In this document: one piece after another, positions 21,616-60,921 of the stretch
Position numbering within the stretch: position 1 is the first letter of the stretch
How the letters are laid out: every line of letters begins with the position of its first letter
Source of the DNA: Chlorokybus atmophyticus
Taxonomy: Eukaryota > Plantae > Mesostigma and Chlorokybus algae
Direction of reading: 5' to 3'
NCBI GenBank assembly: GCA_009103225.1
Contig: RHPI01002112.1
Coordinates: forward strand, 342,150-406,149
Length of the DNA stretch: 64,000 nucleotides
Position numbers and translations under genes: made by a program
Notes under the pieces: model-generated
What the model was told of the DNA's origin: nothing
The model's database searches: none
What the model saw: only the letters and a program-made list of their open reading frames with translations

Positions 21616-23491
21616 ATGGATCGCGGGGTGGGGCCGGCGTCCCCGATGCCGATGCCGGTCCCGCTCGGGGGGCACCAGCACCAGCACCACTCCCACCACT
21701 CCCCGCCGCCCTACATGCAGATGCCGCAGATGCAGCAAAACATGAACAGGCCGCCGCAAGTGCCCGCGGAGGTGAGAGAGAGTGTGCGTGCGTGCGTACG
21801 TGCGTGCGCATGTGTTTATTTGCATACATGCGTGTTTATTTGCATACGTGCGTGTGTGGGCGCGCACGCTTTCGCATGCGTGCGTGGTTGCACGTGCCTG
21901 TGCGCGCGTGTGCTTCTCGGCGCATGTGTGTGCTCGCGTCTGTACGTGTCACTGTTTATTGCTTGGTCCATGCGTTGGTTGCTTCGTTTGTCATTGTGAA
22001 CTTGCAGTGTTCATGGAGCGTTGCGTGCAGGTGGTTGATGTGTTGAAGGAGTTGCAGAGGCAAACTGCGGAGGTGGAGCGGCAGGGCATGCTTCTTATGA
22101 GACAGACGGTGGCGATCAACACGAAGCTGGACAGGGTGCTGGAGATCCTCAACAACATGCAGGCGACGTACCAAATGACCATCACGCAACAACAACAACA
22201 CCAACATTCCCAACAACAACAACCCCAACAACAGCAGCAGCAACAACAACAACAGTTTCATCCCCTGGACGCCCTCCCCGTCAACAACCCCAGCACGGCT
22301 ACCACCACCAACAATAACAACAACAGCATCAACAACAATAACACCAGCAGCAGCTCCTCAATGTATGCACGCGGCAACTCCTCTTGCCTCGTGCCCATCC
22401 TCCCGCGACCCGGCACAGCGCACGCCCTCAGCCCGCTCCCAACAGCACTCCTACAACCACAACAACACTCCGACCACCTCCACCATCATCAACAACAACA
22501 ACAACAACAGCACTTAGGAATAGCAGGGATAGCAGACCTCCAACACCCAGACAAGACCCAACATCAAGTAGCACAACAAGCGCAACAACTACTCCACACC
22601 CAACAAACCCAACATCACAAGCGTGATCAGCCTAAGGTTGCCACAGCCCGCAAGCTCCACGCCTACCCCGCCACCGACATCCCTCAGCTCGACATGATCA
22701 AGTCCTTATCGACCGTGCAAGGCGTGTGGGACGAGTGGATGAAGGGGGACCCTGAGAGTGGTGTGTTACCGATAGAAGAGAGAGAGAGGTTGTGGCCCGG
22801 GGCGGGGTGGAGAAAAAGGAACCCCGTGAAGCAAGCGTTCCATAGGAGGAAGTTGATCGTGGATGCGATCAAGCAACGAGCGAGGGCGGGAGGAGGGGAT
22901 TACGAGGAAGCGGTCGCGTACTTTGAACAGCTGAGGATGGCATCGGTGCCGAGCAGCGTAGATCACCTCTCTAAGGTGGGGTTGTTGGCTATATTATTTA
23001 TGTTGATACATATACAGTCCCGCTCGTCATATGTGTTATGTAAACACGTATGCACAAGTCTTGTGAAATGACACAGATGCACGCACACACGCGTGCGCGC
23101 GTGTGTAGTCGCACAGATTTATGCATAACCTTCATTGAAATTCTCATGAGACCTTGAGAGTACTTCTCATTTTGCTAGCACATTCTGCTTGTAACCTGAT
23201 AGGAGAGGCCCTTGCGTCACGCAGGTGTTGAGGAAACTCCGCACCGAGGCCGAGGGCGGTCCCCGCAAGAAGCGCAAGTCGCCTTCTTCCTCCGGTCTCC
23301 CCGGCGGCGAGGAGGACGTCCCGTCGATCGCGGCTGGCAGTCTCGCGCACATGGACGGCAGCGGTGGAGTGGCTCGCGCTCATCACATGCACCAACACCA
23401 TCACCACCATCATGATCCTGGGCATGCGGATAGCAATGAGAATGAGGAGGATGAGGAGGATGAAGATAACGACCTGGGCCTGGACGCGTGA
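21616..23491 (+). CDS. GCR1_C-domain putative transcription factor, paralog b (poly-Q/N linker)
   Basis: MDRGVGPASPM..., VVDVLKELQRQTAEVERQGMLLMRQTVAINTKLDRV, Q/N/H tracts, LSTVQGVWDEWMKGDPESGVLPIEERERLWPGAGWRKRNPVKQAFHRRKLIVDAIKQR, then the last exon VLRKLRTEAEGGPRKKRK. Stop at 23489-23491. Confidence 0.8.
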
Positions 23492-24066
23492 TCTGCTGTT
23501 GTTGGACGGGAAAACTGTACCAGCGCACGCACGCGCATGCATGCGCAGTCGTGCACGCACGCAAAGATACACACAGCATGAAGCAGCGTACATGCCCCTG
23601 CCCCTTACAAGTATACATATATATTTACCACCCTATATAGCGCATGCTGCTTGATGGCAAGCAGCAGAGGGGCTCCCAGTCGCTTCAGACGTTGCCTCTC
23701 TCGGGCATCTGCCTGTGGTCTCTCTCATGGATAAATGCGCTCTCTGTGCGACAGCAACAACATGCTGGCATGCTGGCAATGATGTTGTATCATCACCATG
23801 TACCTAAACTACATCATAATGTGATCTTGGGGCGTCCAACAAGTGCAGGCTTTAACTTGTGCAGCCATTGTGCACACGCGTCTTGCCTGTGTACTGTCAA
23901 GGCACAGCCGAGGCACAGCGCCTGAGAAAGTACACTGCGTCCGCCAAGCATGACATGTAGGTTGATTCACCCCGGGTGCATTCCTGTACAGCCAACATAC
24001 ACACTAACCGCAGGAGGGATCGACGAGCCATTGATCCCACCCACAGCTCCCTCGCAACCTCTCCCC

Positions 24067-25660
24067 TCATCTCACTTTTCTCTGCTTGCGCACCTTTGCC
24101 TCCTCTTCCTTCTTCTCCTCCTCCCCCTCATCGTCCCATGCCGACCTCCCCCCCCCCCGTCTTAATGTCCCCCTCCCGTCCAGCCAACAGCGCACGCACC
24201 AGCTCCACGCCACGGCCACCACCTTGCCTCCCTTTTCAATGTCGTGCCCACGCTTTGGGTCGGAAACGATTTTGACGGCCACAACATCGGACGCGATGCG
24301 AGGCTTGGTTGATGCGGGCTTGTTGTTGTATAAGAGGCGAGGGATGGCTCGTCATCCACCGCATCATCGTGTGGTTTTCTTCTCGTTGGTTTCTTGCGCT
24401 TGCGCGCGGGAGTAAGTGTGCCTTGGCCTCATCCTCTTGCTTGCATTGGCCCTTGGCCTTGTCCTCACCCTTCTCCTCTTCCATATACTTGTCCCCTGTC
24501 CTTGTCTGTAGCCTTCTTCTTGCCATCACGGATGCGATGCCCGTCCAACACTTTCAACCCAGGCACAGTCGCCAACACCTGACCACAGCCACAACACTGA
24601 CAATCACACACGCACGCGCGCGCGCGTGCACACACCACACCACACCACGCACGTTGTCACGGTGGGGTTCCGCGTCGGCGCACGGGTTTCCCGCAAGGCG
24701 GAGGGGGAGGAGGGGGTGAGAGGAGATGCGGTTGTGGCCGAGGTCGAGATGCGGGTGCGCGAGAGGAGGAAGAGGGAGGAGGGGAGGAACTGTATGCGCG
24801 TGCGTGCGCGCGTGTGCGTGTGCGTGAGGAAAGGGGGGAGGACTGGTCTTAGTTGCGATTCAGTGTACGATCGCATCGACATTCCAATGCACATGAACAC
24901 ATCAACAAACACATGGCAGAGAAAGAACCCGAGCGCGCACAATATTACATTCACACGGTTCCATCAAACACGCACACACACACACATCCCCACGGAGCCT
25001 GTTGTGTGCGCTAGCCTCAGCTCCCCTCACACTCCTCCCCCTCCCCGATCTCACGAGGGCGTGAAGTTTGGCCTTGAGGAGGAGTGGAGTGGAGTGGAGT
25101 GGAGTGGAGTGAGGGGCTGAGAAGAAGGTTGTTGTTAGAGGAGGAGGGCGTGGAGGGAGGGGAGNGGGGGGGTGGGGGAAGGTCGTGAGGGTGATGGTGT
25201 GGAGTGTCATATGTGGTTTAGAGGAGTACGTGCGGGTGCGGGTGCGCTCGTGTGAGTGTCTGCACAAGCGTGCGTATGCCTGCGGTCGTGTGCTCGTGTG
25301 GGTGTATGTGCGTGCGTGGGCATGCATGTGCGAACGTGCACACATTCGTGTATTTAAGCGTGCATGTATGTATATGTGCGTGTGTGCGCATGCACCGACA
25401 CTCACCCTCAGGGCGGTGGGATGTTGGTTCCGTCAAGCGACACCGCGGTTGTTGGAGACGTCCATCCACGTCAGGGACGGACGGCGGCAGGGCTGACTTG
25501 GACTTGAACTTGGAGGACGACGAGGAGGAGGACGAGGAGGAGGAGGAGGAGGAGGAGCAGGGGGGGAGAGAGCAGGAGGGAGGAGATGCAGTTGCGGGCG
25601 AGAGAGAGGCGGGAGGGAACAGTCAGGGAGGCCAGGGACACTTGCAAGTGCATTCCTAAA
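24067..25660 (-). pseudogene. Decayed copy of the SDS22-like LRR gene (43387-45681)
   Basis: Remnants VSLASLT..RLSLARN, SLTWMDVSNN, VPGLKVLDGHRI and GGGRSAWDDEGEEE, broken by frameshifts, deletions and repeat expansion. Confidence 0.8.
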
Positions 25661-26553
25661 TACAAGCATGACGCATACGTCTCACATCAACGTGGCGCAC
25701 GCGTTCTTCTTCAACGAAAGAGTTGTAGAGTCAGATGAATACAGCAACGCAAAGTCAACGGCATGTGCGCCTATGAAAGCATAACAGCGCCATGCAACGT
25801 GTAATGTATGCATCACATGCAAGACGTGCGAGAATTGTGCTTGACTACCATCAGACAAAGCATCGAACAGTCTCCTGTTGCGGCACCCAGTAACAGATTC
25901 TATCACACGAACTGGCTATTGCAGTACAACTCCTGATCATATCCAGTTGTCCGTTTTGAGGGGTCCTGCTTCTCCTCCTTACTCGCCGCCGCCGCTTGGC
26001 CTGGCCTGACGGACCAGGCTGGTCCCCAGCAAGATAGTTGTGTTCGTCTGCGCTTGTGCACAGCACACTACTTGTGCTTAGCAGGCTACGTTCTCCTCCG
26101 CTCAGTCTGCTTACTCAGCTGCTGCATTTCATCTGTCTGGCCTGGTCTGATGTGGAGTGGCCTGGTGTCTGGCCTGGTCTGATCTGGTCTGCTGTCGCCT
26201 GGTGGCTATCTGTCTTGGCCTGCAGGAGCGAGTAGGCGTAGGACTCTCGTGACAGTTACTTGCTAATAACATGCATATGTGGCATGCGCGTGTGTCAGGA
26301 GGTGGTACATGCATGGTCACAACTTCCTGTCTGCATTGAGGTCGCTGCTCTGTTACCGCAGGTTCAATGGCACACACATGCATTTGAAAAAGAAGTCTCA
26401 GTCAAGTCAAGGAAGCAATCAAAGCAAGGCGTGCAAGGCGGGGGACGGTGCATAGAGACTCTTGTTAGCTCTTGTTGGGGGCGGTCAACAGGCTGCGACA
26501 GCAGGGGGAGTGGGTTGACTAGCATCAGGAGGAGAGAGGGTTTGGGGGACGGA

Positions 26554-26642
26554 GTGTTACCGCTGGAGCGAAGCGCCGCACGGGCACTGCTGCTGTCAAG
26601 AAGCAGTCGCTCCTTTGCTCTTAAGCAGGCAAGCATGACAAA

Positions 26643-26674
<32 letters not shown>

Positions 26675-28902
26675 GAGCGCGCTTGCACAATGCACACAAC
26701 AACACCACTTCACCCCTTCTCTCCACAGCCCCCACCTCCGCCTCTTCTCAAACACATCACCCTCCTCCTCCTCCTCCACCTCCACCGATGACACCCATGA
26801 CGACGATCCCCTCCTTGACTTGGACATCCCTCAGCCGCACGGCACCTATCTATTAGACAGAGATGCGCTCGGCACGAGGGTGCAGACGAGTCGGTCGGAG
26901 CTGATGCGTTGGTTCCGCGACATGAACATGATGCGACGCATGGAGATCAGGGCGGACGTGATGTACAAGATGAAGGAGGGGGTTAGGGGGTTCTGTCACC
27001 TGCATGACGGGAAGGAAGCGGTGAGTGGGAGGGGAAGGAGAGGGGGATGAAAGTGTTGCTTCCGTTGGTTGCGCACATGTACTTGGGCATGATGTGTGTG
27101 TAAGCAACCACGTGTATGCAAACAAGGGCACACACGAGACACAGCATGACGTGTGGCGTTGTCTGGTGTGCCCACCCACATTGACACCCACCTCCCCACT
27201 CCCACGCAGGTCCCCGCCGGCATGGAGTCCGCCCTCACCCGGGACGACGCCGTCATCACATCCTACCGCAATCACGCCATCTACCTCGCGCGCGGCGGCA
27301 CCGTAGAAGCAGTAAGACACACTCTCTCTCTCCCCCCCTCCCCACACTCACCCACACACTCACACCACTCCTTCCCCAGGTTATGGCGGAGCTTCTTGGC
27401 AAGTCCACGGGTGCGGCCCGTGGTAAAGGCGGGTCCATGCATCTGTACAAGAGGGAGAACGCGATGTACGGAGGGTGGGGGATTGTCGGGTCGCAGTGCC
27501 CCATCGGGACGGGACTGGTGTTCGTGCACAAGTATAGGGGACAACAGGTGGGTGGGTGGGAATTGCCTTAAGCGGTTTTGTGAGGATCAGTGAGGTGGCA
27601 CTGTTATGATAACACCTTTTGGATTTGACTTCAGACTGTCAGCGTGACAATGTATGGTGATGGCGCTGCCCAGCAAGGGCAGGTCAGCAAGTAGAAGTAG
27701 TGAGATGCATGCGCACATACGCACACAAGTAGTACACACGCACATATGTGCGCATGCACATGCCCACACACGCGCATGCGCATGGTTACACCCAAACGCT
27801 CGCACACACGCATACACTCCTATTGGCGGGAGCATCGACTCAATCGGTTGCGCTTGCACTGATGTGGTGTGTGGTGTTTGTGGTATCTCATCACCAGCTG
27901 GTGGAGGCCATGAACATGGCAGCGCTGTGAAAGCTCCCCGTCATCTACACCTGCGAGAACAACCAACGCGGTACCTACTTCTTCACCTGCCCACACCACA
28001 CATGTGGACACCCCAACTCCCCCACCCCCCCACCCCCCCACCCACTCACTCAGGCATGGGCACTCGCATTGAGCGCTCCGCCGCCGACCCGCGTCTCTAC
28101 ACGCGTGGGCATGACATCCCCGGCGTCACGGTGGACGGCATCGACCCACTCGCGGTCAAACGGGCGTTCGGGTTCGCTAGACAATTTGCACTTGAGAACG
28201 GGCCCATTGTGAGTGAGGATGAGGAGCACGCACGCATATGCGATGGTACAGATACAAGCACACGTGCACGCGCGTGTTCACGCATGCTTGTGCTTGCGCC
28301 TGTGCTCGCGCGCCCGCGAACACACACACACACACAGTGTCATGCTTTTTATTCTGTTGTTATTTCGCAGGTTTTGGAGTTGGACACGTACCGCCCTGAA
28401 CCGTTTGGCATGAGCGACCCGGGGGTGTCGTATCGCTAGCGCCAAGAGGTACGGGACAGGTGAGAAGGAGCAGTAGTAGTAGTAGTAGCCACTGCTGGTG
28501 TGTGCTCTCAGGGCTCAGCTGGTGACGTGTGTGGTCTTTCAGTACCACGATCCGATTCAACTGGTGAGAAACCAAGTGCTGGACAACAACTTCGCCAGCC
28601 AGCCGGAGGAGCTGAAAAGCGTCGAGAAGGAGGTCAAGAAAGAGGTGGAAGAAGCCGTTGTTAGAGCAAAGGCAGAGAGTTGAGGGAGGGCAGGTGCCTG
28701 TCTGCGTGTGTGCGCATGCGTGCGTGTGCATGTGCGTGTGAGTGTGTATTATGACCCCCCAAAGGCTGTTTTTGGTTTGTTGCGCAGGAGGCGCCTTTCC
28801 CTGAGGACAAGGAGCTGTATCGCAACATCTACGTGAACGACAAGGGCATCCCCGTGCGCGGCGTGGACCATCATGAGCGCGCACTTCACACTGCCCGTGT
28901 GA
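26554..28902 (+). pseudogene. PDHA: PDH E1 alpha pseudogene (copy of 39849-42469)
   Basis: Same exon structure as the divergent copy. The ATG is replaced by GTG (26554), W>TGA at 27928-27930, Q>TAG at 28437-28439, HPHS is altered to PEPFG, and there is a 1-nt insertion in the last exon. Confidence 0.9.
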
Positions 28903-29439
28903 TCGAGGTGACTGCTTAGACACGTATTGAGGTGAGGGTGGGACTTGTATCAACGTGTGATGTGTGGATGGGGCACGCGAGGCGATGCAAGGACAGCTCC
29001 ATTGTGGTTGCGCAGCCCAAGCTCAACTTATGAACTGCGGCTCAAGTTGATGAGAACAGCTTTGTGAAATCTCTTCACACGTGTAACAGAGTGTGCGCGG
29101 GTGATTGCGTGCGTGTGCGTGTGCGGCTGTGGCTTGAGCAGCGCCAGAAGACTTCCAATCCGTGTGTGACTTTTGCAAGACCTGGCTTGAAGTCAAAGGT
29201 CCCTCTCAACAATCTACGGTACAGTTATGACCCAACATTACCACAACAACCCAATGCCTAAGCTAGAACCATACACTGATACCGGGTTGATGGGAAACTC
29301 GCGTGTACGCCTGCGTAGCTGATGTACCGTGTTAGTATGTCGGGGGTCGTGTACTGCACATCCATTGGTCACTCTTCAGTCGCCTTTTGCTGTTGCCACG
29401 CTTGCACACATGCACACATATGCATGTGTGCATGTGTGT

Positions 29440-30455
29440 GCATGTGTCGCACCCGTTGCGCCGCCACGGATGCCATCGCGCTCATGGCCGCTGCGATCGC
29501 ATACGCCTCCGACATCTCCACAACCACACGCGCGCGCACATGCGCACATGCACACATATGAACACACGCCCGAGCGCGCGCGCGCGCAGGCTCCCACACA
29601 CACGCCAACCTCAACCTCAACCTCAACCTCAACCTCAACCTCAACCTCAACAACCTTACACCGAACTTCCACTTACCCGCCTCCTCCATCATCCTTGACT
29701 TCGACCCCCTCGTCCCCAACGCACTTCCTCCCCCCCCCCCCCCTCCTTGCGCAATGTCGGTATTGGCAACGGTGGCGTGCCGGGTATCATCACCACTGTT
29801 GTTTGTGTGGGCGATGAGAGTGTCTTCAAGGCGGAGGGGGGAGGGCTGTCGATGTTGGAGGGGTATCTGCCAGGAGGGGTGAGGATGTTAGAACAAGTGC
29901 ATGTTGTGTCGCTTAACACTTGACAATGGTAACGACAAATATATACCGGTACCGATGCGTGTGGTGTGTGAATGTTGTGTCACACTTGCATACCGAACCA
30001 AGAGTGATGCTGTGGATGCAGTTTTAAAGTGTGACGCAACTGAATGATGTTGTTGTGTTACAGTTATACTGCTGTACTGTGTACATACAACCCACGAACC
30101 TCGTGAGCGCAAGCGCGGTGACTATGAGCGCGGAGGAGGATGCGCCAACACCGGAGTACATAGAGTTGTTGTTGCCTCCAAACAGAAGCACCCGTGCGGC
30201 CTCCCTCATATGTACCTGGTTCCCCCCACCTCCACCACTTCCGCAAACCCGTGGGGTGGAAGGCTCTCCCCAGCGCCCTCCCCTCCCCTTAATCCCTTCT
30301 ATTGCCGCCGAGTATCACCTTCTTGTTGGCAAACAAGACAACACGTTGCACAAATCTTGTGGGATGCGCACACGGCGTCCCCATGGGACTCGCCCGCGCT
30401 CGCGATGGCGGACGCGCCGTCGCAAGACACGCTTTCGGAGGATGAGAGTGGAGAG
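29440..30455 (-). pseudogene. 3' fragment of the CH-PH-LRR gene carried in the duplicate
   Basis: EMSEAYAIAAAMSAMASVAAQRVR and ARVLLFGGNNN...VGASSSALIVTALAL match 39300-39370 and 38550-38660. Confidence 0.8.
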
Positions 30456-30479
30456 GCGCGCGCGTGCGTGCGTGCACAT

Positions 30480-30675
30480 ATGCGCGTGTGCTCCTCCTCA
30501 TCTTTATACCCTCCTACTCGCTATCACGAGTGACGCATACTGTGCTCTTGTCCGCACAATCTGAGGACGTGTCCAACTTCGACGAGGGCTTCGCGAGCGA
30601 GGTTCCCCAGGACAGCTACGTGGAGAGGCCACCTGGCGGGGGGCCACCTCGCTAACCACTTCGAGGGATGCTCGT
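30480..30675 (+). pseudogene. Fragment of the last intron and exon of the AGC kinase gene
   Basis: [22 protein letters not shown]...HFEG matches [23 protein letters not shown]...HFEGF at 46190-46090. Confidence 0.85.
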
Positions 30676-30989
30676 GATGATGATGTTGGTAATGTGTTAG
30701 TTGTAGGGTTAGCTTGTAACAGTCATCTTATGATGCAGTATTAGTGCACACCATGCGTAGCGCATCTATATTGAACTTTTTGATTCCTGTCTACTGTGTT
30801 TGTCGCCTCAGAGCCGACAATGACAGTAGACAGAATACCTAAACATTATCATCCTGTCGCTTCGTACTTGAGTTACACTTGAAAATGAGTCTCAAGTCCA
30901 GGCATGCGGCTCAACTCGCGTAAGCACCCACAGCCTCAACAACACCAACACTGTACACTATACACGCGATCCACACAACCTCATCGTCG

Positions 30990-36800: not shown

Positions 36801-39401
36801 ACAAGTTATATATACTGTGTTGTACACGCTATGCTGTATTACCAAAAAAGGTGCTGCTACACCATTGCGAGACGCATTTGTCACACAGCAGTATGTTGCA
36901 TATCATGTAACACATTGTTATGCTGACACTATGTGACTGTGTGCACACTGTATGTACCTTACACACCAGGTGACATGGCGGGTTCGATCTTCACCCTTGG
37001 AAAGCTCCTCGAGCCCGTCGACAAGGACACTCACAATCACAAGGGCAAGGACAAGGAGAACGGGTCGGGCGGCAAGAACTGGGCGGCGGAGGTGGCGGAG
37101 AGGACCATGGTGCTGACGACCGAGAAGGAAAAGCTGGCGCTGAGGGCGGAGAGCGCGGAGGACTTGGCGGCGTGGATGCCCCACCTGTGCATCAAAGTGG
37201 GTATCTGTGGACACGTGATCATTCAGTCTTGCACTCGCGCACACACATACTTTCACGTGTGCGTGACACGAACATGTGTACCTACGCGCGTGGTCACACA
37301 CGTACATGCACACCCAATGTACAGTTACACGCAGCGCAACATATCCCATTCGAGCGTGTCCGCAGCACATCTGAACTTGTATCCCTATTCCCCCCCCCTT
37401 CTCTCTCAGGTCGCTGAGCTCCGTTACCTCGACTCCCTCCGCGGCTCCCCCCCCGACCCCATACTCCTCTCCGCCCTCCGTGCCGACCGCAACTCCACCG
37501 TCCTGCGTGTGGATCGCGCGCGGGACGGGGGAGCGGCGGCGCTCGCGGTCGCGGAACCGATGAGGTGGAACAAGGGCCTGGTGACGTTCTCGGCGCGGGA
37601 GTGCGGGTTCGGGGACCTACAGATGCAGCTGCTCCACGCACCCCTGACAGCGGCGGCCTCACGCAACACCCTCACCGTCATCGACCTGAGCGTGAGTGCT
37701 TGTCTGTGTATGCAAGCACCCACCCACCCACCCACCCACCCACCATCCATCCTCACCCCCCCCTCTCCCCTCTCAGGGCAACAGCCTCGGTCCCAAGGGC
37801 GCCTCCGCCCTCGGTTCCGCCCTCAAGTCCTCCTCCTCCCTCCGCGAGCTGCTGCTGGAGCGCAACGCCATCGGGGACGCGGGACTGGCGGCCCTCGCGG
37901 CGTACTTGTTCCAGGGAGGGGTGGCGAGAACGCTGGAGAGGTTGGGATTGGGGGATAACCGCATAGGGGACCAGGTGGGTGGGAGGGTGGGTGTTTCTGT
38001 CTTGCTGTGCGTGCGTGCGTGCGTATAGACTTGCGTCCGCATGTTACCAACCTGTTAGTTGCTGTCTTTCTAGGGTGTGTCGAAGCTGCTGGAGTGTGTC
38101 GAGTCCAGCGCCCCCGGCGAGCACGCCCTCACCGCCATCGAACTAGCCCAGAACGACATCGGCGACGTCGGCGCAACCGCAGTAAGACTATGCCAAGCTC
38201 CCCCAACCCCACCCACCCCACCCAACATCCCGCTAACCTCACCTCCCCCCTCTCTCCAGCTCTCCCGCCTCATCCTCCTCCCCGGCACCCGCATCTCCAC
38301 CCTCAACCTCCACTCCAACAGCATCTCCTGCGACGGCGCTGTCGCCATCGCTCACGCAGCGGAGTCCCAATGGGACGCCGCCTGCACCGCCCACAAGAAG
38401 GGTGAACATGTTGTCGTGTTCCCTCTGAAGAAGGTGGTGCTGAGCTGCAATCGAGTGGGGATGAGGGGAGCGGAGGCGCTCGGGAGAGCCTTCCATCGGG
38501 GGTTCGTGGAAGGGGTGGATGTGGGAGGGAATGCGGCAATGACGGGGGAGGCGGCACGGGCGCTGCTGTTTGGAGGAAACATCAACAACAATACCACACA
38601 TTCTGTTGGCGCATCTTCCGCGCTCACCGTCACGGCGCTGGCACTCATGAGGTGTGTGAGTCGCATGTACAAGGGTTGGCACATGTTGTGAAGTGCGATA
38701 CAACCAAGATAGCATTGAAAAAGTGCAGAAGTGTGACACAACCGGATGATGATGTTGTGTAACAACATTCTACCAGCAGCATCAATCCTTTCTTGGTACA
38801 CGTGTGTGACTCAACATGCACTTGTGCTGATTATCAACATCCCCCCTTTCTTCCAGATCTCCCTCCAACGTCGACAGCCCTCCCCCTCCCCCTCTCCCAA
38901 CACCCACCCCCACCCTCCCCGCTCCCGTCCCCGCCGCCCCGAAGATGCTCTTATCGCCCGCAAACAACAACAACAACAACTCCAGGCACACCCACGGCGG
39001 CGCGCGAGAGGATGGAGGGGAGGGGGAGGAGGGGGGAAGCACGAGGGGGAAGAGGGGGTCGAAGCGGCCGGATGATGATGCGGGTAACTGAAGACAATGT
39101 TGGGATTGATGTCGGTGTTGTTGTCGTTGAGGGCACGGGTGTATGCAGGAGTGCGCGTGCATGCGTGTGGGGGTGTGGGAGTGCATGTGTGCATGCGCCC
39201 ACATGCGTGCGTGCGTGAGAGTGCCTGCATGTGCTTGTGCATGCTCGTGGGTATATAATCGTAAACGACTGACCCCAACTTGTGCCAGACCCGGGGAAGA
39301 TGTCGGAGGCCTACTCGATTGCAGCGGCCATGAGCGCAATGGCGTCCGCGGCGGCTCAGCGTGTTCGCGCACGCCAGCAGCAGCAACAGGAGGAAGAGTG
39401 A
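33884..39401 (+). CDS. Large cytoskeletal/membrane adaptor: Pro-rich region, actinin/filamin-type CH domain, coiled coil, PH domain, RNI-like LRRs
   Basis: In-frame exons give VLAWANGHL...DFADGVR|LVNLVEM...RRYHARPTLQIKK|IENVNLAL...ISAEDIVNG|NERATAGLLWHLLRHY (CH1), RERFLQWCE, QVDELESEVDDLRLEL (coiled coil), VVHQGWMWK...WKRRW|FVM.GATLHYY...LALRAESAEDLAAW (PH), and DLS|GNSLGPKGA, LERNAIGDAG, LGDNRIGDQG, LAQNDIGDVG, LHSNSISCDG (LRR_RI). Start and last exons are inferred. Confidence 0.8.
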
Positions 39402-39848
39402 TGGACGGTGTACAACATGCGTGAAAGTTCCAATCCCAAGACATGTTCGGTACATCCTCTACGAAGGCGTACGTGAGGCGTGAGGCGACACGCGAATATG
39501 TGATTGGATAGTTCTAGGTTAGGCATTGATTGAGGAGTTCTGGTGATGTCTGGTCATGACTGTATCATACATTGTTGAGAGGACCTTCCCCTCCATGTTC
39601 TACCAGGGACGTACACGGATCGTCCAAGCGCTGCACATGCACATGCGCACACAGGCACACACATGCTGTTGCGCACTTCACGTGTGGTTGAGCAGCGTAA
39701 AGGTTGGGCTTGATCTGCAAAACAACAACGCGAAGCTGTCCTTGCCACACCTCACGTGGCATCTACACATACTGATACTTACAGTCCCATCCTCAAGTCC
39801 ACAAGCAACTGCAAGCCATCGAATCCCTACAGGCAACGCAATGCGTGT

Positions 39849-42287
39849 TCACACGGGCAGCGTGAAGTGCGCCTCATGATAGTCCACGCCGCGCACGGGG
39901 ATGCCCTTGTCGTTCACGTAGATGTTGCGGTACAGCTCCTTGTCTTCGGGAAACGGCGCCTCCTGCATTACAAAAAAATGGCTGGGTTGGGACATGCTAT
40001 ATACAAACAATGCAAACACACTGAGTGCTAGGCAAGCAACATGCCCTCCCTCACCTTTGCTTTCTTGATGGCATCCTCCACCTCTTGCTTGACCTCCTTC
40101 ATGACGTCCTTGAGCTCCTCCTCAGTGGCGAAGTTGTTGTCCAGCAGCAGCTTTCTTACCCTCTCGATCGGATCATGCCCCTGAGAGTAAGTGCTCATCA
40201 GCGCAAGCACATACAGCACATACATACACATGCGCACGTTGCCAACAGCAATCTTTGGTGTACTCCCTCACCTCCCGCCACTCTTGTATCTCCTTGCGCT
40301 GGCGATACAAACCCGGGTCGCTCATGCTGTGAGGATGGTAGCGGTACGTGTTTAACTCCAGAACCTGCGATGTGCGAGTGGGTGTGTGCGCGTGCATGTG
40401 CAACCGCGCATGCCGTTGCAATAGACTCTTGCGTCAACTCACTCCACATTCATTCAAGGCACCAACACGACACAACATCCACTCACAATGGGTCCGTTCT
40501 CCAGCACGAAGCTCTTGGCGAATCCGAATGCCTGCTTGACGGCGAGCGGGTCCATGCCGTCCACCTTGATGCCGGGGATGTAGTGGCCGCGCGTGTAGAA
40601 ACGGGGGTCGGCGGCGGAACGCTTGATTGAGGTGCCCATGCCTGAATTGGGGTGGTGTTGGGGTGAGTGGTGGTTGGATGCTTAAGGTATGGGGAGGTAA
40701 GGAACATACCGTATTGGTTGTTCTCGCAGGTGTAGATGACGGGGAGCTTCCACAGCGCCGCCATGTTCATCGCCTCCGCTAGCTGTTGGATACCATAAAC
40801 ACCACATCACCACGTGCGCAACTGAGCAACTCGATGACCCCTCCAGCCCGCTACTCGAGTGTGTATCACGCGTGTTTATGGGTGTGCATCTCTCACCATC
40901 TTCTCACCTGTCCTTGCTGGGCAGCGCCATCACCGTACATCGTCACGCTCACATTCTACAACAGAGACAAGGTGTTGTCGTATCAGAGTCACCTCACAAG
41001 AGAAAGCGCACACACACTCCCTCTCCCACCCACCTGTTGTCCCCTATACTTATGCGCGAACGCCAGTCCCGTCCCGAGCGGGCACTGCGACCCGACGATC
41101 CCCCACCCTCCATACATCCCGTTCTCCCTTTTATACAGATGCATGGACCCGCCTTTGCCCCGAGCCGCACCCGTGGACTTGCCAAGAAGCTCCGCCATAA
41201 CCTGGGGAAGGAGTGGTGTGAGTGTGTGGGTGGGTGTGGGTGAGTGTGGGGAGGCGGGGGNGGGGGGGGGGGGAGAGAGAGAGTGTGTCTTACTGCTTCT
41301 ACGGTGCCGCCGCGTGCGATGTAGATGGCGTGGTCGCGGTAGGCGGTGATGACGGCGTCGTCCCACGTCAGGGCGGACTCCATGCCGGCGGGAACCTGCG
41401 AGTGGAGTTGGTTTGTTGTGGTAGGCACAACATAACCACACTTCATATTGCTCGTGTGACCCATAACACCAACATTGCGAGATACAAGACACACTGGACG
41501 GGGTCACTTGCACGAGCATGGGCTGGCTAGCAACTGCAGGATAGAGGTGGCACACATGCAGCGACCAAGCGATCACGCCATCCATTAGTCATGTGACTGA
41601 TGATCGCATGAGGGGAGTCAGGTGTTCTCGGGCGTGCGCACGTGTGAGAAAGCCCGAGAACACACCTGGGTGCGTGTGCGTGCGTGTGATGCATATGCAC
41701 ATGTACGTTATGGGTGCGAGGGTGGAGGCGTGCGTGCGTGTACGGGTGCAAGTGTGCATGCTCTTACGCGCGTGCATGCGTGCTTGCGTGTGTCTGCGCC
41801 ACACAGTGTGCACATGTGCGTTGCGCAACAAACGGCAATATCACTCAATATCACTCACCGCTTCCTGCCCGTCGTACAGGTGACAAAACCCCCTGATCTC
41901 CCTGTTCTTATACAGCATGTCCGCCCTGATCTCCATGGTTCTCATGACGTTCATGGCGCGGAACCAGCGCGACAGCTCCGACCGACTCGTCTGCACCCGC
42001 GTGCCGAGAACATCTTTGTCCAAGAGATAAGTGTCATACGGGCGAAGGAGATCCACCTCAAGGAGGTCGTCGGAGTCGTCGTGGGAGGGGGAGGGGGAAG
42101 CAGAGGAGGCTGATGCGGTTGACAAGAGGCGGAGGTTGGGCTGTGTGGAGAGAAGAGAGGTGGAGTGTTGGCACTTGTGGGCAGCGTGCACAGGCGTGCA
42201 TGAGAACACGTAGATGAAACAGACACTTGTACTCGTGTACGAGCGTGCACGCGGGCGCGTGGCAGGGGTACGGGCATGTAGCGCACG

Positions 42288-42376
<89 letters not shown>

Positions 42377-42469
42377 GTATCGTTTTGTCATCCTTGCCTG
42401 TTGGTGAGCTGAGGAGCGACTGCTTGTGGATAGAAGCGCCCGTGCGACGCTTCGCGCCAGCGGTAACAT
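39849..42469 (-). CDS. PDHA: Divergent pyruvate dehydrogenase E1 alpha paralog, reading frame intact
   Basis: ATG at 42469 with an R/S-rich presequence. Motifs [62 protein letters not shown] and [14 protein letters not shown] at 39849-39851. I found no stop or frameshift across the spliced exons. Confidence 0.88.
42290..42374. repeat. (GA)n microsatellite in intron 1 of the divergent PDHA
   Basis: About 42 units. A shorter (CT)n tract sits at the homologous position of the pseudogene (~26645-26675). Confidence 0.95.
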
Positions 42470-43386
42470 CGTCGCCAACCTCTTCCGCTTGCTTTAGTCC
42501 AGTCCTTCTGCCTCCTTTGACCGCCCCTACCGAGAGCGGCTGCGTTCGCACCCCGCTTGCACTCTCCCCTCAAGCGCCTATCTGGTTCTTTCTTTGTCTA
42601 GTCGTCTACTTTCTTTCAACTTTGATCTGCATACACGCGAGTTTGATGAACTGGTAACGCGTCGACTAGAAACTTGCCTGCAAGCGACAAGCGGAGATTA
42701 TGTGGGTGTCGCGACGTGCGGGCAATTGCTCACTGACTGCTGAGTATCGTAGAGAAGTAAAGATACCACAGAATGAGGTGATGTTTGGCAAGCCAACATG
42801 TTGAGGAAAGCGATGAAAGTCGAGTCGAGTGCACGAGGGGCAGGTTGCATGCATGTACTGGATTGCCTGTTAGCAATGATTCCTCACTGTTGAACCGTCT
42901 ATGGCACATTCACAGCTGGTTTCAACACAACATCATGCACGTAAAAACTGGCGTTCAGCATGCATGCATGCATGTGTGCTTGCAGTTGGTACAGGTCTCG
43001 ACCGCAATGCAGAGATGTTGTACTCACGCATATCCACACAAACGCACATCAAGCATGCAGTAAGCGCATACATTGACGAGTCCCACGCCTTCTCGCTCCA
43101 CGAGTCCAGATAAGACGCCAGGCTGCACCACACCAGACCAGACCGGACCAGGCCAAAGCGAAACGTACCAGGCCTGGCTGCTGACGTAAGCAGGCTGATC
43201 AGGATCTCTCTCTTACCACTTGTGCGTCCGCAGCACAAGCAGTGCGATTAGCACAAGCACAGCACTTGTGCGCCGCACAAGCGCTGGCCTGGGACCAGAC
43301 CAAGCCCAGGCCAGAGCAAGCGGCGGCGGCGGCGGCGAGAAAGGAGGGGGAGGAGGGGGAGGAGAGAGACCAGGAAGGACACGTAG

Positions 43387-45681
43387 ATGGTGGTGTTTAC
43401 TGCGGAGGATGCGGTGGCGCTGGCGGGGGTGGCGACGGCGGGGGAGGTGACGAGGCTGGACCTGGCGGGGAGGGACATCCACGAGGTGGGCCCGCCCACC
43501 TGTGTTTGATGCAGTGCTGACTAGATAGATGTACACGTGTGTTGCATCTACAAGTTTTGTACGATGTGCGCCACCCCACAAAAGCCCCGTTGCATGAAAC
43601 GGTACGTTATTTTGACGGTTGTCACGCAGAGATTGCATGTCATGTAGGTTTGCATTATGACGCGACAATTGGCAAGTGTCGGCACATGCCCTGACACGTG
43701 CTTGTGCTGTTAACTTGACGCACATCGTATGACAATGCGTCATGTATTGTTACGAAGCATTTGTTGAACCAATGCATGCGGCTGGTGATTTGGTGTAAGA
43801 CAAACTCAAACTTTCATTGCCATCCTGCTCATGACCTCTTTGTCCTCTTGCAATAATGCATATATGCTTCGCAGGTCTCACTGGCCTCCCTGACGTCCCT
43901 CACCCGCCTGTCCCTCGCCCGCAACCGCCTTTCCTCCCTCCTGCTCTCCCCCTCATCATCTAAGTCATCCTCCTCGACGTCAGCCACGTCGGCGCTGCCG
44001 CCGTCCCTCACGTGGCTGGACGTGTCCAACAACCAGCTCACGTTGCTCGACGGCATTCAACACCTCACCTCCCTCACGGTGAGTACACATACAAGCACGT
44101 GCATCTGCATAGGTACATGCGCGCGCATCAAGACACAAACATGCACGAGCACGTACGCACGCACGCACACACACAGGCAGGCCGGCATGCGCTCGCATGT
44201 GCACTTTCACCCCCATGTCGCTTGTGCGAGTGTGTGCACGTGTGGGCGCGTGTGGGCGCGCATACCCGCTCGTGTGCACGCGCACGCGCACGCGCACGCA
44301 TCTCTCGGTTGCAGTTGACTCACCACACCCACCCCTCATTTCCGCAGGTCCTGAACATCGCCCACAACTCCCTCCCCTCCCTCTCCCCTCTCCGCCTCCT
44401 CCCCTCCCTCCGCGCCCTCCTCGCCAACAACAACCGCCTCTCCACCTCCCCCTTCCCCTTACTCAACTCCAAACTCCACACCCTCGTCCTGAGCCACAAC
44501 GGCATCAGCGCGGGTGTGGGGGATGCTCTGAAGGAGCAGAGCGAGTTGGTGAAATTGTCGCTGAGTTACAATGAGATCGGGGAGGTGGGGGAGAAGGAGT
44601 TGGAGGAGTGTAAGGGGAGTCTCGTGGAGCTGAGACTGGCGCACAACAGGATGGAGGTGAGTGAGTGTGGTTGGGGGAGTGGGTGGCGGGCACGAGTGCA
44701 CGCGCGCTTGTGATCAATATCCATTCATGTACACATACAGTTCCTCCCCCCCTCCCTGTCCCTCCTCTCCCGCCTCCGCATCCTCGACCTCGGCCACAAC
44801 CGCATCTCCTCTCTCGCGCCCGCCTCCGCACGGGTGCTGGCGGCCCTGGCGCGACCGAGCGGGGAACTGCGGAACCTCAACCTGGCGGGGAATGGGTGCG
44901 CGGGGGCGGAAGATCACCGGGAGAAGGTAGGTGGGGTGGGAGAGTTGTGTTTCGGTTGTTGGGCACCTGTTGAGTTGGTTGGTCGAGTCGTGTGGGTGTG
45001 TCTTTTGTTGGTCAGGTGTTGGCGATTGTGCCCGGGTTGGAGGTGTTGGACGGGCATCGGATCATTGGCGGCCAGGATGGCAAAAGGAAGGCCAGAGATA
45101 CAGACAAGGACAAGGAGCACGCTCGGCGTAAGGACAGGGATGAGGTCCAGGAGGAAGAGGAGAAAGTCAAGGACACTGTGAAGGCCAAGGGCAAAGGCAA
45201 TGACAAGGATGAGGCCAGAGGCAATGGCAGGCCCGATCCCGCGCGCAAGCGCAAGAAACCAGTGAGAGAAGACCGGACGACACACGACAACGAGGGCGAC
45301 GTCGACGATGATGCGTTGGATGAAGAGCAGTTCCTCTCCACAGCAGCAGCGCAGCCCGCCCCCTCTCATCACAACAACAACAACAACAAGCCCACAACCA
45401 AAAAGGCCCGCGCCGCGTCCGGCGTGGTGGCCGTGAAGACCGTCACGAACGCGAAGGCGCACAACAAGGAGCGGGACGGGGGGCTCCGCGGCAAGGGAGC
45501 GGTGGCGGAGCTGGTGCGGGCGCTGTCGGCGATGCGGGAGGGGGAGGTTGGGGCGGGAGGGAGGTCAGCGTGGGACGATGAGGAGGAGGAGGGGGAGGGG
45601 AAGGAGGAGGAGGGTGAAAGGGAGAAGAGGCAGGGGAAGGGGGAGAAGGTTAGGGTGCACAAGCGGAGTAGAGAGTGGTGA
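43387..45681 (+). CDS. SDS22/pprA-like LRR protein with LRRcap and charged tail (At5g22320-like)
   Basis: VTRLDLAGRDIHE|...WLDVSNNQLTLLDGIQHLTSLT|VLNIAHN..LRALLANNN..LHTLVLSHN..LVKLSLSYN..ELRLAHN|..ILDLGHN..LNLAGN|VLAIVPGLEVLDGHRI, a K/D/E-rich tail, GVVAVK and GGRSAWD. Confidence 0.8.
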
Positions 45682-46039
45682 GGTGACAGGGGAGACTTAG
45701 AGGGAGCTGTGGTGGGGTCAATGGCTCGTTGATCCCCACTGCTGCTGGTTGTGTGCATGTGAGTTGTACTTTGCTTGTGTATATGAACAGGTCGGACAGG
45801 TTGGCAATGGTTCATCATCTCAGTCGACTCTGTTGTGGATGCGTCCAGAAAATCCTTGCGTGTGCTTCGTGTGGTGCGCTGCATGTTGTGTGGTACACTA
45901 CATTATGAGATACTGTTACAAAGCTAACCCTATTATTTCTACCAACCATACCGCCTTCATCATCACATGTTGCATTGGTCAAATTGCATTCTCCAGTGGT
46001 GCCCCTTGAAGAGGGGTATATATTGCCCAGTTTCCCTCT

Positions 46040-49000
46040 TCAAGCCTGTGCGGCGGGCGGCATCATGAGCAGGGCCGACTCCGGCGCATATGAGAACCCC
46101 TCGAAGTGGTGCGCCAGGTGGCTGCTCTCCACGTAGCTGTCCTGAGGCACCTCGCTCGTGAAGCCCTCGTCGAAGTTGGACACGTCCTCCTCAGACTGCA
46201 GGAGAATGAAACAGCCAGTATGTGTCATCACTCGTGATGGTGAGCAGAAGGGATCATGGCGAGGAGGAACACGCGTGTGTGCGTATGCGATGATGTGTGT
46301 GCGCGCCCATGCACTCGCATGCAAACAAGCAGATGCGCACACTCATGCGCAAGCCCTCACTTGCCCACGCACACGCTGACACACAACCACCACATCCCCT
46401 CCTCCCGCCCACACCCCTCACCCACCTGTATCTTCGGTCTGAACGGCGCGGGCACTTCCATCCTCATCATCGCCTCCCACTCCACCCCCTCGAAGAACGG
46501 GTGCGTCTTGATGTCCTCCGCGTCGTCGGGACCACCTCCAAGCCGGCTCTCCGGATCCCTGTCAAGGAGCTGTGGAGGCACACAGAGGGGTGAGGATGTT
46601 GGGTAAATAGTGGTAGTGGTCGTGGTAGTGGTAGTGGTAGTATCAGACAACATCACACCTTGGTCAGGATGTCTATGGCGGCCGGGGGGGTAAAGGGGGG
46701 GAAGTGGAGGGGGGCGCGGAGGATCTTGGCGTACATCGACTGCATGTTGGTGTCGTAGAAGGGGGGCTGTGTGACCAAGCGATCACGCCATCCATTAGTC
46801 ATGTGACTGATGATCGCATGAGNNNNNNNNNNNNNNNNNNNNNNNNNNNNNNNNNNNNNNNNNNNNNNNNNNNNNNNNNNNNNNNNNNNNNNNNNNNNNN
46901 NNNNNNNNNNNNNNNNNNNNNNNNNNNNNNNNNNNNNNNNNNNNNNNNNNNNNNNNNNNNNNNNNNNNNNNNNNNNNNNNNNNNNNNNNNNNNNNNNNNN
47001 NNNNNNNNNNNNNNNNNNNNNNNNNNNNNNNNNNNNNNNNNNNNNNNNNNNNNNNNNNNNNNNNNNNNNNNNNNNNNNNNNNNNNNNNNNNNNNNNNNNN
47101 NNNNNNNNNNNNNNNNNNNNNNNNNNNNNNNNNNNNNNNNNNNNNNNNNNNNNNNNNNNNNNNNNNNNNNNNNNNNNNNNNNNNNNNNNNNNNNNNNNNN
47201 NNNNNNNNNNNNNNNNNNNNNNNNNNNNNNNNNNNNNNNNNNNNNNNNNNNNNNNNNNNNNNNNNNNNNNNNNNNNNNNNNNNNNNNNNNNNNNNNNNNN
47301 NNGGGGGGGGAGCACATAAGCGTGCATTGCGCAGTTAGCGGGAGCAGTGGCGGTGCGTGTGTGCGCAAAAGTGTGTAAGGTTGTGTGCGTGGTTATGCGT
47401 GCATCTGTGTGCGTGGTTATGCGTGCATCTGTGGGTGTGGGTGGGTGGGTGGGTGGGTGTCTGCGCACGCGCGCATGCGTGCGTGCATGTGTGTGCGTGA
47501 ATGTGCATACATATGTGTATGTGCGTGTGCTGCACGTTTGTGTATGTGTGTGTGCTGCACGTGTGCACGCGTACCAGCCCGGACAACATCTCATACAGCA
47601 GAGTCCCGAAGCTCCACCAGTCCGCCGCGCGGCCGTGGCCCTCACCCGCAAGTATCTCAGGCGCTGGGGTGGGGAGAGAGCAGAGCGTAACAGATATATT
47701 GAGGGCGACATCCTCGTCAGGTAACTACACATGCACACAACACACGCCCAACAGCTATACCGAGGTACTCGGGCGTGCCGCAGAACGTCGTCGCGGACGA
47801 GTTGTCAGCGATGCCACCCTTCGCCAGCCCAAAGTCTGTCAGATGGATGTGCCCTGAAGCATTCAACCAAACACGTGAGCATCAACCCAACATGCGCGTT
47901 CCGTGTTAGCCTCTGCGTGTGTTGTCGTACCCGCGGCGTCGAGCAGGATGTTCTCGGGCTTGAGGTCCCGGTATATGATGCCGAGGGAGTGGAGGTGACC
48001 CACAGCCAGGACCATCTCCGCGGCGTAGGAACGGGCGCGGTCCACGTCGAAGCAACCCGCGTTCTGAGAGACAGAGCGAGTAGGTGTTTGTGTTGGTTTA
48101 TGTGTGTTTGCAAGCATTGCAGCCAACATTGTTGGCTGCAATGCGTGCGCTTGTATTGGAGTGCTTTGGGTTGCGTGCGTGCGTGCGTGTGTCGGAGTGC
48201 GCGCGTAAGTGTTCAGGTGTGGCGGTGCGTATGTGTGCGCCTGAGTGCGTGTGCGTGTACATGCGCGTGCATGTATTTGTATGCGTGCCTTGAGGTGGAA
48301 GAAGAGCTCCCCGCCGTTGAGGTAGTCCAGCACCAGGTACAGCTTGTGCTCCGTCTGGAAGGCGTACCGCAGCCCCACCAGGTACGGATGCTGCACCGCC
48401 TGTCCCACGCAACAACCCAACATACCACATCACCACCAACCATCACACACACACCCAACATCGTCATCAACATGCACTTGCCTGGAGGATGTGGCGTTCG
48501 GTGAGGGTGTGCTCGCGCTGTCCCTTGACGGCGATGTGTTGCTTGGACAGGACCTTCATCGCGTAGATGCCGTGGGCGCCCTCGGTGCCCTTTTTCCTCA
48601 CCAACATCACCTGCACGCGTGTGTGTAGGTGTTGTGTCAGCAATACATAAGTTGAGAACATGAGCTTGGTTGGTGTGAGATGACTACTGCGTGCTGTTGT
48701 GTGCATGTGTGTGTACAGAACAGACCTTGCCGAAGGAGCCCTTGCCCAGCACGCGTAGCAGCTCAAAGTCGTCCTTGCTCACCTTCTCCTTGCCTTGGGT
48801 GTAGCACATCTCCTGCGGGTGACACCACAACAGGCATGCTTAAGCAAGAGCAATTGCTGCCCACAGACGTGCAGGCACGCACATGTACATGCACGTGTTC
48901 CGCACACGCCCCCCCCCCCGAAAGCATCTAAGTAGGAAGCCCACCTCAAGATGAGTGCTCNGTACAACACAGCTATTGTATGCATGTTCATTTGCATTAA

Positions 49001-60205: not shown

Positions 60206-60921
60206 TGTACAACACAGCTATTGTATGCATGTTCATTTGCATTAACTTGACGTAGAGTGAGCATGCAATGATATGCTAGCATGCACAACTGCACGCCCAG
60301 TACACATACCTGCAGTTTATAAGCTGTGCCACACATTCTTACCATATGTAATACCTTGCAACAACTTTGAAACAATTCCACTAAATTGATGTATGCGAAG
60401 GCGTGTGCAGTGTAGTGTATTTCCAAGTTCAACGAAATGTGCATGAAGCACCGTTTCTATAGAAGGCCTTTTCCCCGCCTGTCACAATGTGATAGGCGGG
60501 GAAAAGGCCGACGTCTGCAGAAACTGCAATGCACCAATTAGTTGAAATTGTTAATACTTTGATTCCGCGAAATCTTCGGATAAAATAGTGGTCATAAAGT
60601 TGTTTTTCATTTGCTTAGAACCGCCAGCCTATGCATTCTTGTCTACAATTGTACACTTTATAATATCGCCAACAAATAGCTTTGCCAAACAACCAACCAG
60701 AGTTATTTTTTCACAAAGATTATGCGGCACTATGGCAATGTAAAAGTGGACACATGTGCAATCCATTGCAGGACGTATATAGCCAGCTCATGACCTTGCC
60801 TCTCCTCTGTTTTAGAGAATCGTTGGCAATCAAGCCTAACAATGCATTTCCCCTTATTGTCACAAGTTGTTGCTCATTGCTTCGCCCATGTCATTATTGC
60901 ATAAATCAGCAGGATGTACAG
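60206..60921 (+). repeat. 716-bp AT-rich direct repeat, intergenic copy
   Basis: Appears identical to 48961-49676. Starts with TGTACA and ends with TGTACAG. Confidence 0.9.

Follow-up and report, generated by a model that had tools for sequence, protein, structure and literature searches.

The stretch of DNA analysed here, referred to as the window, comprises 64,000 nucleotides of the genome of the streptophyte alga Chlorokybus atmophyticus (contig RHPI01002112.1). It contains a block with four genes, two of them whole and two in part, d, c, b and a in the order of the + strand, with Pfam matches to E1_dh, LRR_8/LRR_4, LRR_6 and Pkinase_C (Table 1). In the case of the CH-PH-LRR gene, ORF-level Pfam scans confirm the LRR part alone and did not recover the CH and PH domains. 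The PDHA gene has exons at 39852-41954 or further, and the protein jgi/Chlat1/6688 (P0014) maps to it at 100% identity, while the kinase-domain exons of the AGC kinase gene are found at 47338-48429, outside the block. The same ~8-kb block is present a second time, duplicated in reverse 7.5 kb from the donor, where its neighbours are a GCR1_C-domain gene and a SNAPC1 gene, whose 3' ends converge on it. A third PDHA copy, at 17.3-19.6 kb, was considered as another copy of the block; it has the PDHA exons alone in common with it, without the neighbour genes, and is a separate, older duplication.

Table 1. Donor block, segments of the copy and associated features (positions in the window; primes mark the copies of donor segments A to D)
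Feature	Position	Strand	Description
Donor block	38291..46309		Order d-c-b-a on the + strand: 3' part of the CH-PH-LRR gene (+), PDHA gene Chrsp49S00480 (-), LRR gene (+), 3' end of the AGC kinase gene (-)
B'	23986..26500	-	Degenerate copy of the LRR gene and part of the divergent promoter spacer (donor 45769 to ~42540; blastn HSPs)
C'	26751..28899	+	Copy of the divergent PDHA gene over its full length, with matches to all nine donor exons; now a pseudogene
D'	28900..30458	-	Copy of the 3' part of the CH-PH-LRR gene, cut within an LRR exon; 27131-30463 corresponds to 41458-38285
Internal junction	30453-30463		In a three-way view the copy follows D up to here and A from here; joins donor ~38291 and ~46309
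A'	30464..30764	+	Tail of the last kinase intron, last exon (Pkinase_C) and part of the 3' UTR or spacer (alignments)
Imperfect palindrome, 47 nt	30787..30833		Self-reverse-complement match, 23 nt past the right end of the copy
Donor interval missing from the copy	45770-45874		Spacer between the convergent LRR and kinase genes; candidate opening point of a circle, or gap between two invasion points

Self-BLAST of the window reveals a long anti-diagonal, along which positions 23986-30463 (+) of the copy correspond to 45769-38285 of the source with HSP identities of 63-91%, and a second, short one (30442-30638 to 46320-46112, E 1e-30). By local alignment, the short piece pairs 30480-30764 of the copy with 46290-45875 of the source, spanning a deletion of ~120 bp in the copy. 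The two blocks keep the same relative orientation and their order is swapped with respect to the donor, giving two parallel diagonals with strong E-values. A first-pass annotation of this DNA had predicted such a permuted inverted duplicate, with two anti-diagonals and abutting donor coordinates, and had placed its outer ends at ~23960/45790 and 30765/45875, its internal junction at 30455-30480 and the source limits at 38290/46300; both self-BLAST and local alignment confirm this arrangement, to within ~25 bp. As ~25% of the aligned sites differ between copy and source, the pair is not a collapsed or duplicated assembly repeat.

The segments of the copy have decayed to different degrees. B' is identical to the donor at ~74% of the aligned sites, with a few LRR exons still seen by tblastx (24519-24584 and 25564-25644) and no LRR domain detected in the scanned ORFs. 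The PDHA exons of C' retain 84.8% identity (dS 0.40, dN 0.11, dN/dS 0.28) and carry two stop codons (TGG>TGA and CAG>TAG) and a 1-nt insertion, which shifts the frame in the last exon. A dN/dS value well below 1 suggests that this gene copy evolved under partial constraint, consistent with a functional period before the stops. In D', the homologous coding stretch, which lies in a single frame in the donor, shifts frame (-3 versus -2), and no long ORF is left on the - strand. In A', the splice acceptor has changed from CAG to CAA, 13 nt have been inserted with loss of the frame, and ~120 bp are deleted with respect to donor positions 46087-45966. The gene fragments in the copy were dead on arrival.

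No protein model for the PDHA copy turned up among the best 120 of 8000 scored hits in the P0014 protein search: apart from the donor PDHA itself, nothing among them is more than 63% identical to it, and no PDHA orthologue from another Chlorokybus that could serve for dating is found among them. Exact look-ups gave no match either for the annotated PDHA product, in search of a second assembly, or for 18 ORFs across the junctions and neighbour genes, and a scan of JGI metagenomes with the PDHA protein returned distant relatives alone (at most 59% identity).

One donor breakpoint falls in an LRR-coding exon (38291 lies inside the LRR_6 ORF 38074-38688) and the other in the AGC kinase gene's last intron; each of these genes runs on outside the block. 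Since the donor genes span both breakpoints, while D' and A' are frameshifted stubs, the polarity from donor to copy, as previously annotated, is clear from the gene structures. The accompanying description of the copy as a set of truncated pieces holds for these two stubs, but a complete PDHA gene was also carried, together with the LRR gene and the divergent promoter region that the two share.

The age of the two pieces is informative with respect to the number of events. Exon identities differ, with 92% in the exon part of A' (n=87) and 75% in the D' exon, as would be expected if an inverted duplication of 38291-45769 had been followed later by the independent insertion of a 435-bp kinase 3' fragment beside it. 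At neutral sites this difference disappears: the intron tail of A' is 75% identical to the donor (n=84) and the PDHA introns 75.8% (n=693), with 72-75% in D' and 74% in B', and A' as a whole falls at the 87th-92nd percentile among windows of equal size. High identity in the A' exon is to be expected because the donor's exon for the AGC hydrophobic motif is constrained. Independent events would moreover need a double coincidence, in that the inserted piece came from the donor segment next to B and landed beside D' in the same orientation, and we consider them exceedingly unlikely. Because the non-coding identities are equal, as had been predicted, the two pieces may derive from one event of one age, within the limited power that a piece as short as A' affords. 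Judging from the synonymous divergence of the PDHA exons, the event is old (dS 0.40).

At the internal junction, the outer ends of the donor block meet. Possible microhomology there amounts to a few bases at most, and at ~25% divergence the junctions are too altered for a base-level reading of microhomology or filler. No significant homology exists between the two donor ends (71% of shuffles give a best local score at least as high), and no tRNA genes or Rfam families lie at the breakpoints, none being found in the window. The junction adjoins (GCGT)n-like simple sequence, which forms part of the kinase intron, and such low-complexity sequence might have led to a chimeric join of D' and A', or to a false outer join, during assembly. 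The scaffold does contain runs of N and two exact repeats, one of 50 bp (41563-41612 = 46773-46822), which abuts a gap and comes within 500 bp of donor segment A, and one of 715 bp, which begins at a single N. None of the three junctions contains N, however, the nearest being the single N at 25165 and the run of 480 N at 46823-47302. The divergence of ~17-25% between A' and A marks a real second locus, and a random misjoin would not hit the exact position set by a copy of one lap, which makes an assembly artefact very improbable.

The outer ends of the copy, 23986 and 30764, correspond to donor positions 45769 and 45875. In the donor these positions are separated by no more than 105 bp, so that the copy covers one donor unit (~8019 bp) to within 1.3%, with at most 105 bp unaccounted for. 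A weak colinear match between 30825-30858 and 45829-45795 (p ~0.04 against windows of real sequence) may reduce the missing donor interval to ~25 bp. A right end placed at random within one unit would leave a gap or an overlap no larger than 105 bp with a chance of 2 x 105 / 8019, or ~2.6% by our own calculation. This figure bears on the proposal that the template was a head-to-tail concatemer, arising from a short-lived tandem duplication in the donor or from a rolling circle, and that it was copied in reverse across the unit junction, with later collapse of the donor tandem. A tandem duplication also creates the head-to-tail junction 46309|38291, and tandem repeats collapse cleanly by recombination. 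Such a course takes three events, however, and leaves the one-unit length to that ~2.6% chance. Neither the donor nor the sequence past A' in the copy shows any trace of a second unit: an overlap, or B following A', was looked for as the sign of a second lap, and the extension past the ends of the copy does not exceed the background of real sequence. Homology continuing unpermuted past the ends was found in neither flank. We therefore regard a concatemeric template as improbable.

The permuted order, the end-to-end junction, the near-abutting outer ends, the equal non-coding divergence and the polarity are observed directly, and their most economical reading is a circular DNA intermediate of one lap, for which we see an even chance; the free circle, its closing and its opening are inferred. 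According to this model, ~8.0 kb (~38291-46309) would have been copied, or excised from a sister chromatid, and then circularised through a non-homologous end-to-end join. A single cut in the LRR-kinase spacer (45770-45875) would then have opened the circle, at a cost of up to 105 bp, and the linear molecule would have entered the interval that separates the GCR1_C and SNAPC1 genes, 7.5 kb away, in reverse orientation. The PDHA copy would have been under partial constraint at first, acquiring its stop codons later. Opening at one point would make the copy almost exactly one donor unit long, with no extra assumptions. The first-pass annotation had also attributed the duplicate to a circle, which the permutation and the one-unit length fit, although a replicative route, which it also named, gives the same end product; the simple excision that it envisaged does not agree with a donor still in place, which implies copying or excision from the sister chromatid.

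Such a replicative route, without any free circle, is possible but doubtful, and might have taken two forms. In a template switch of the MMBIR/FoSTeS type, a strand stalled or broken at the target, perhaps at the palindrome (30787-30833), would have copied from 45875 to 46309, jumped to ~38291, copied to 45769 and returned. Following a two-ended break, both ends would have primed outward on one donor spot, copying from 45769 downward and from 45875 upward, and then joined at 38291|46309. An inverted copy 7.5 kb from its source is the usual result of strand switching at or behind a fork, and donor ends without homology are compatible with it. The palindrome, 23 nt from the insertion point, folds strongly as DNA (-15.6 kcal/mol, z -6.4, with none of 200 shuffles as good) and is a possible fragile or stall site that would mark the break at the target. 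Template-switching repair typically leaves short templated insertions copied from near another breakpoint, and A', of ~300-435 bp and derived from a point 105 bp beside the other breakpoint, could be one of these. MMBIR/FoSTeS events are complex rearrangements with templated insertions; the present locus resembles them in its local inverted copy, in the short extra piece from beside another breakpoint and in the presence of secondary-structure sequence at the target. These models do not predict, however, copied pieces that sum to exactly one donor unit. Stopping within 105 bp of the start is either a coincidence of ~3-10% or the result of a looped or blocked template, which is nearly a circle, and neither the orientation of A', the same as that of B'C'D', nor its origin from exactly the adjacent side is required. 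Events of the MMBIR/FoSTeS type are discussed in PMC7450558, where Chicote et al. invoke MMBIR for the insertion step. The sequence of one old example cannot by itself separate a free circle from replication on a looped template.

The surroundings of the insertion also bear on the capture of the block by a transposon with a circular intermediate, such as a Helitron or a Crypton. Near the right end of the copy is a palindrome able to form a hairpin, with CTAA after it, and the gene 0.9 kb to its left encodes a GCR1_C domain, a type derived from Cryptons. The protein consists of a coiled coil, poly-Q and the DNA-binding domain and nothing else, without a recombinase part, and the palindrome is single-copy in the window. 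Around the copy, neither transposon ends, terminal repeats nor a target-site duplication were found, and the scanned ORFs contained no transposase, RepHel or tyrosine recombinase. The donor itself is host DNA of an ordinary kind, with genes crossing both breakpoints, and transposon capture is thus hardly credible.

A replication error with a circular intermediate is reportedly also at the basis of origin-dependent inverted-repeat amplification in yeast (ODIRA), said to have been put forward by Brewer et al. in 2011. The inverted local copy is a common trait, but ODIRA gives an in-place inverted triplication, with short inverted repeats at its bounds and an origin inside, whereas the Chlorokybus locus has a single, displaced and permuted copy. 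In cattle, the colour-sidedness events of Durkin et al. are reportedly hundreds of kilobases long. These translocations of KIT via circular intermediates (Durkin et al. 2012, Nature 482:81, cited in PMC7450558 and PMC10462705) are reported to share with our case a permuted segment, an internal junction fusing the donor outer ends and breakpoints without homology. They are recent and took place between chromosomes, whereas the Chlorokybus copy is 8 kb long, lies inverted 7.5 kb from its donor and is old.

The first-pass annotation placed the signature in a few animal cases, but it is also known from yeast and from ~20 human segmental duplications (PMC7450558, PMC7188851). The human pairs described by Chicote et al. 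2020 (PMC7450558) and the eccDNA-mediated duplications of Takahashi and Innan 2020 (PMC7188851) show the same flip from A-B/C-D to B-A/D-C, with two parallel dot-plot lines, and there, too, the donor was inferred from gene content. NHEJ or MMBIR has been discussed for their closing and insertion (PMC7450558, PMC7188851), and in published cases the donor ends lack homology, as in the Chlorokybus block (PMC7450558). The human duplications of Takahashi and Innan extend over 20-130 kb at 95-97% identity and were reported without new coding gene copies (PMC7188851); the Chlorokybus block is small, is ~75% identical at neutral sites and includes a whole PDHA gene, duplicated and then partly constrained. 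No permuted duplicate of the circle type from the green lineage was found in the literature searched, and according to a 2023 plant paper, how eccDNA relates to genome structure has been described only poorly except in cancer, yeast and cattle (PMC10462705).

The Chlorokybus duplicate is one old, unprovable example of a signature already described. The origin of dispersed, non-tandem duplicates is still poorly understood, and permuted duplicates are one of the few lasting traces that point to a mechanism. A case with three junctions in an early-branching streptophyte alga widens the taxonomic range beyond cattle, yeast and humans, and shows that whole genes can be duplicated in this way. It is conceivable, though rather unlikely, that genic DNA circles re-inserting in the germline provide a streptophyte alga with a working route of gene duplication, which here would have supplied a complete extra pair of PDHA and LRR genes with its own bidirectional promoter region, the PDHA copy being partly constrained before its death.

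Comparison of the window with itself has revealed an inverted, permuted duplicate, located at 23986–30764, of a donor block at 38291–46309. On the minus strand the donor reads A-B-C-D, with the 3' end of an AGC kinase gene (A), an LRR gene (B), a divergent PDHA gene (C) and the 3' part of a CH-PH-LRR gene (D), and the copy reads B-C-D-A (primes denote the segments of the copy). In self-BLAST, a long inverted match split into HSPs of 63–91% identity pairs copy positions 23986–30463 with source positions 45769–38285, and a short one adjoins it (30442–30638 = 46320–46112, E 1e-30). By local alignment, A' consists of about 105 nt from the end of the final kinase intron, followed by the final exon with its AGC C-terminal motif and then some of the 3' UTR or spacer, up to 30764 (= 45875), with about 120 bp lost from the copy before this last part. 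In a three-way view of the junction, D gives way to A at copy positions 30453–30463, where donor positions near 38291 and 46309 are fused. As the left end is 23986 (= 45769), the outer ends of the copy are 105 bp apart on the donor. These analyses confirm both the description and the coordinates of the permuted copy in the first-pass annotation. The full-identity match of protein jgi/Chlat1/6688 to the divergent PDHA exons assigns the window to Chlorokybus atmophyticus (Chlat1 assembly).

Features around the copy and its donor (window coordinates)
Feature	Position	Strand	Remarks
GCR1_C gene, second paralog	14360–15082	+	
Canonical PDHA gene	17297–19566	-	
GCR1_C-domain gene	21782–23071	+	
Copy	23986–30764		
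SNAPC1 exon	31967–32632	-	
CH-PH-LRR gene	38074–38688	+	Position is that of the confirmed LRR_6 ORF
Divergent PDHA gene	39852–41954 or further	-	Protein jgi/Chlat1/6688 (Chrsp49S00480; P0014) maps on nine exons, 39852–41954, 100% identity
LRR gene (LRR_8, LRR_4)	about 43.9–45.1 kb (exons)	+	
AGC kinase gene	46040 to beyond 48429	-	Pkinase_C in last exon; kinase-domain exons 47338–48429

The copy equals one donor unit to within 1.3%. A weak colinear match (30825–30858 = 45829–45795), which ranks at the 4% level when compared with real sequence of the window, may reduce the donor sequence missing from the copy to only about 25 bp. A run of the right flank into B was rejected, 2.3% of real-sequence comparisons being as good and the match looking like low-complexity noise. 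No homology continues past the copy ends in either flank, and thus the copy has no second lap; a concatemeric or tandem template is a much less likely origin.

The first-pass annotation had proposed that an ~8-kb circle was excised and re-integrated, inverted, 8 kb from its source. The geometry and polarity of this proposal stand, and a putative circular intermediate is the most economical explanation of the sequence, one that we hold with middling confidence. The 38291 end would have been joined to the 46309 end, closing the donor block as a circle, and a single cut would then have released a linear copy of one donor unit, which directly explains its length. If the right end were free within one unit, the calculated chance of a gap or overlap of at most 105 bp would be ~2.6%. 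No homology was found between the two donor ends, so that closure would be by end joining, as in published cases. Replicative repair without a free circle, by two template switches or by a break with both ends priming outward at one donor spot, is the main rival, a less likely but plausible route that at this age would leave much the same sequence: the copy is local and inverted, and a 47-nt imperfect palindrome (30787–30833; 20-bp stem; DNA fold -15.6 kcal/mol, z -6.4; single-copy within the window), 23 nt past the right end of the copy, could stall a fork or break, but the one-lap length is unexplained unless the template itself looped. Capture by a Helitron or Crypton is disfavoured: the donor consists of ordinary host DNA, and no transposon features were found around the copy within the window.

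The direction of the duplication is indicated by the breakpoints. On the donor, a 205-codon open frame encoding RNI-type LRRs runs across position 38291, and position 46309 falls in the last kinase intron, with the kinase-domain exons extending beyond. The coding stretch of D' shifts frame, and A' has lost the splice acceptor and bears a 13-nt insertion; these damaged stubs identify the copy as the derived one, in line with the earlier polarity. A 12-nt inverted repeat (46293–46304/46335–46346, 92% complementary), at and just past the kinase-intron breakpoint, may be due to chance in CA/GC-rich simple sequence.

At aligned, ungapped sites, identity between copy and donor is 75.8% in the PDHA introns (n=693), 74.0% in B', 74.9% in the D' exon fragment, 72.2% in the rest of D' and 75.0% in the A' intron tail (n=84). 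The A' exon part reaches 92% (n=87), a high value to be expected since the exon is under constraint in the donor and changes can accumulate freely only along the copy lineage. Whole A' (83.6%) falls at the 87th–92nd percentile of same-size windows in the long block, which is compatible with the equal divergence of both segments predicted previously, the short piece giving this comparison little power; two independent events are much less probable, as is an assembly chimera. The dS of the PDHA pair, 0.40, shows that the duplication is old.

The earlier statement that the copy holds truncated pieces applies to D' and A' but is incomplete, since the PDHA and LRR genes lie wholly within the block. 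The PDHA copy has 9/9 exons, with 84.8% identity and a dN/dS of 0.28. At sites conserved across six outgroup PDHAs, 25 replacements fall in the copy lineage versus 7 in the donor lineage; splitting dN by these counts gives a rough copy-lineage dN/dS of ~0.4, which means relaxed constraint, although the copy has changed less than it would have under neutral decay from the time of duplication onward. The gene now carries two premature stops (TGG>TGA, CAG>TAG) and a 1-nt insertion in its last exon, and its YRYHxHS loop is degraded. Among the best 120 of 8000 scored hits, no protein is closer than 63% identity to the donor PDHA, and hence none models the copy. The ORFs scanned in B', which is more degraded than the PDHA copy, contain no detectable LRR domain.

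The canonical PDHA is a third such gene, nearer to Arabidopsis PDHA than Chrsp49S00480 is; it retains a 12-residue loop, and Chrsp49S00480 reads YRYHPHS. Because only PDHA exons are common to it and the duplicated block, it stems from an older, separate duplication. It is flanked by two paralogous genes with GCR1_C, a DNA-binding domain of Crypton-derived type; the one nearer the copy combines coiled-coil, poly-Q and GCR1_C without the recombinase part, and terminates 0.9 kb short of the copy's left edge. Of a 50-bp exact repeat, one unit lies in a stretch of PDHA intron 1 absent from the duplicate (41563–41612) and the other abuts a 480-N gap inside the kinase gene (46773–46822); the repeat is either the terminus of a young transposon shared by the two introns or an artefact of gap closing. 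A 715-bp direct repeat of 100% identity (48962–49676 and 60207–60921), starting directly after a single N at 48961 in the kinase gene region, resembles an error of assembly or gap filling, or alternatively a duplication of very recent date.

A flip of block order is the published diagnostic of duplication through circular intermediates (PMC7450558, PMC7188851); the cases described are the cattle KIT translocations (Durkin 2012, cited in PMC7450558), one in yeast (cited in PMC7188851), sixteen human duplicate pairs, cSDPs 1–16 (PMC7450558), and three human cases of 20–130 kb (PMC7188851). The Chlorokybus copy displays every sequence-level criterion of these papers, the physical circle itself being putative. 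Full-text literature searches returned no green-lineage case of a permuted duplicate. Unlike the published cases, the Chlorokybus duplicate is small, local and inverted, and old, with whole genes duplicated. Duplication with a flipped block order is thus already known, and Chlorokybus adds another example.
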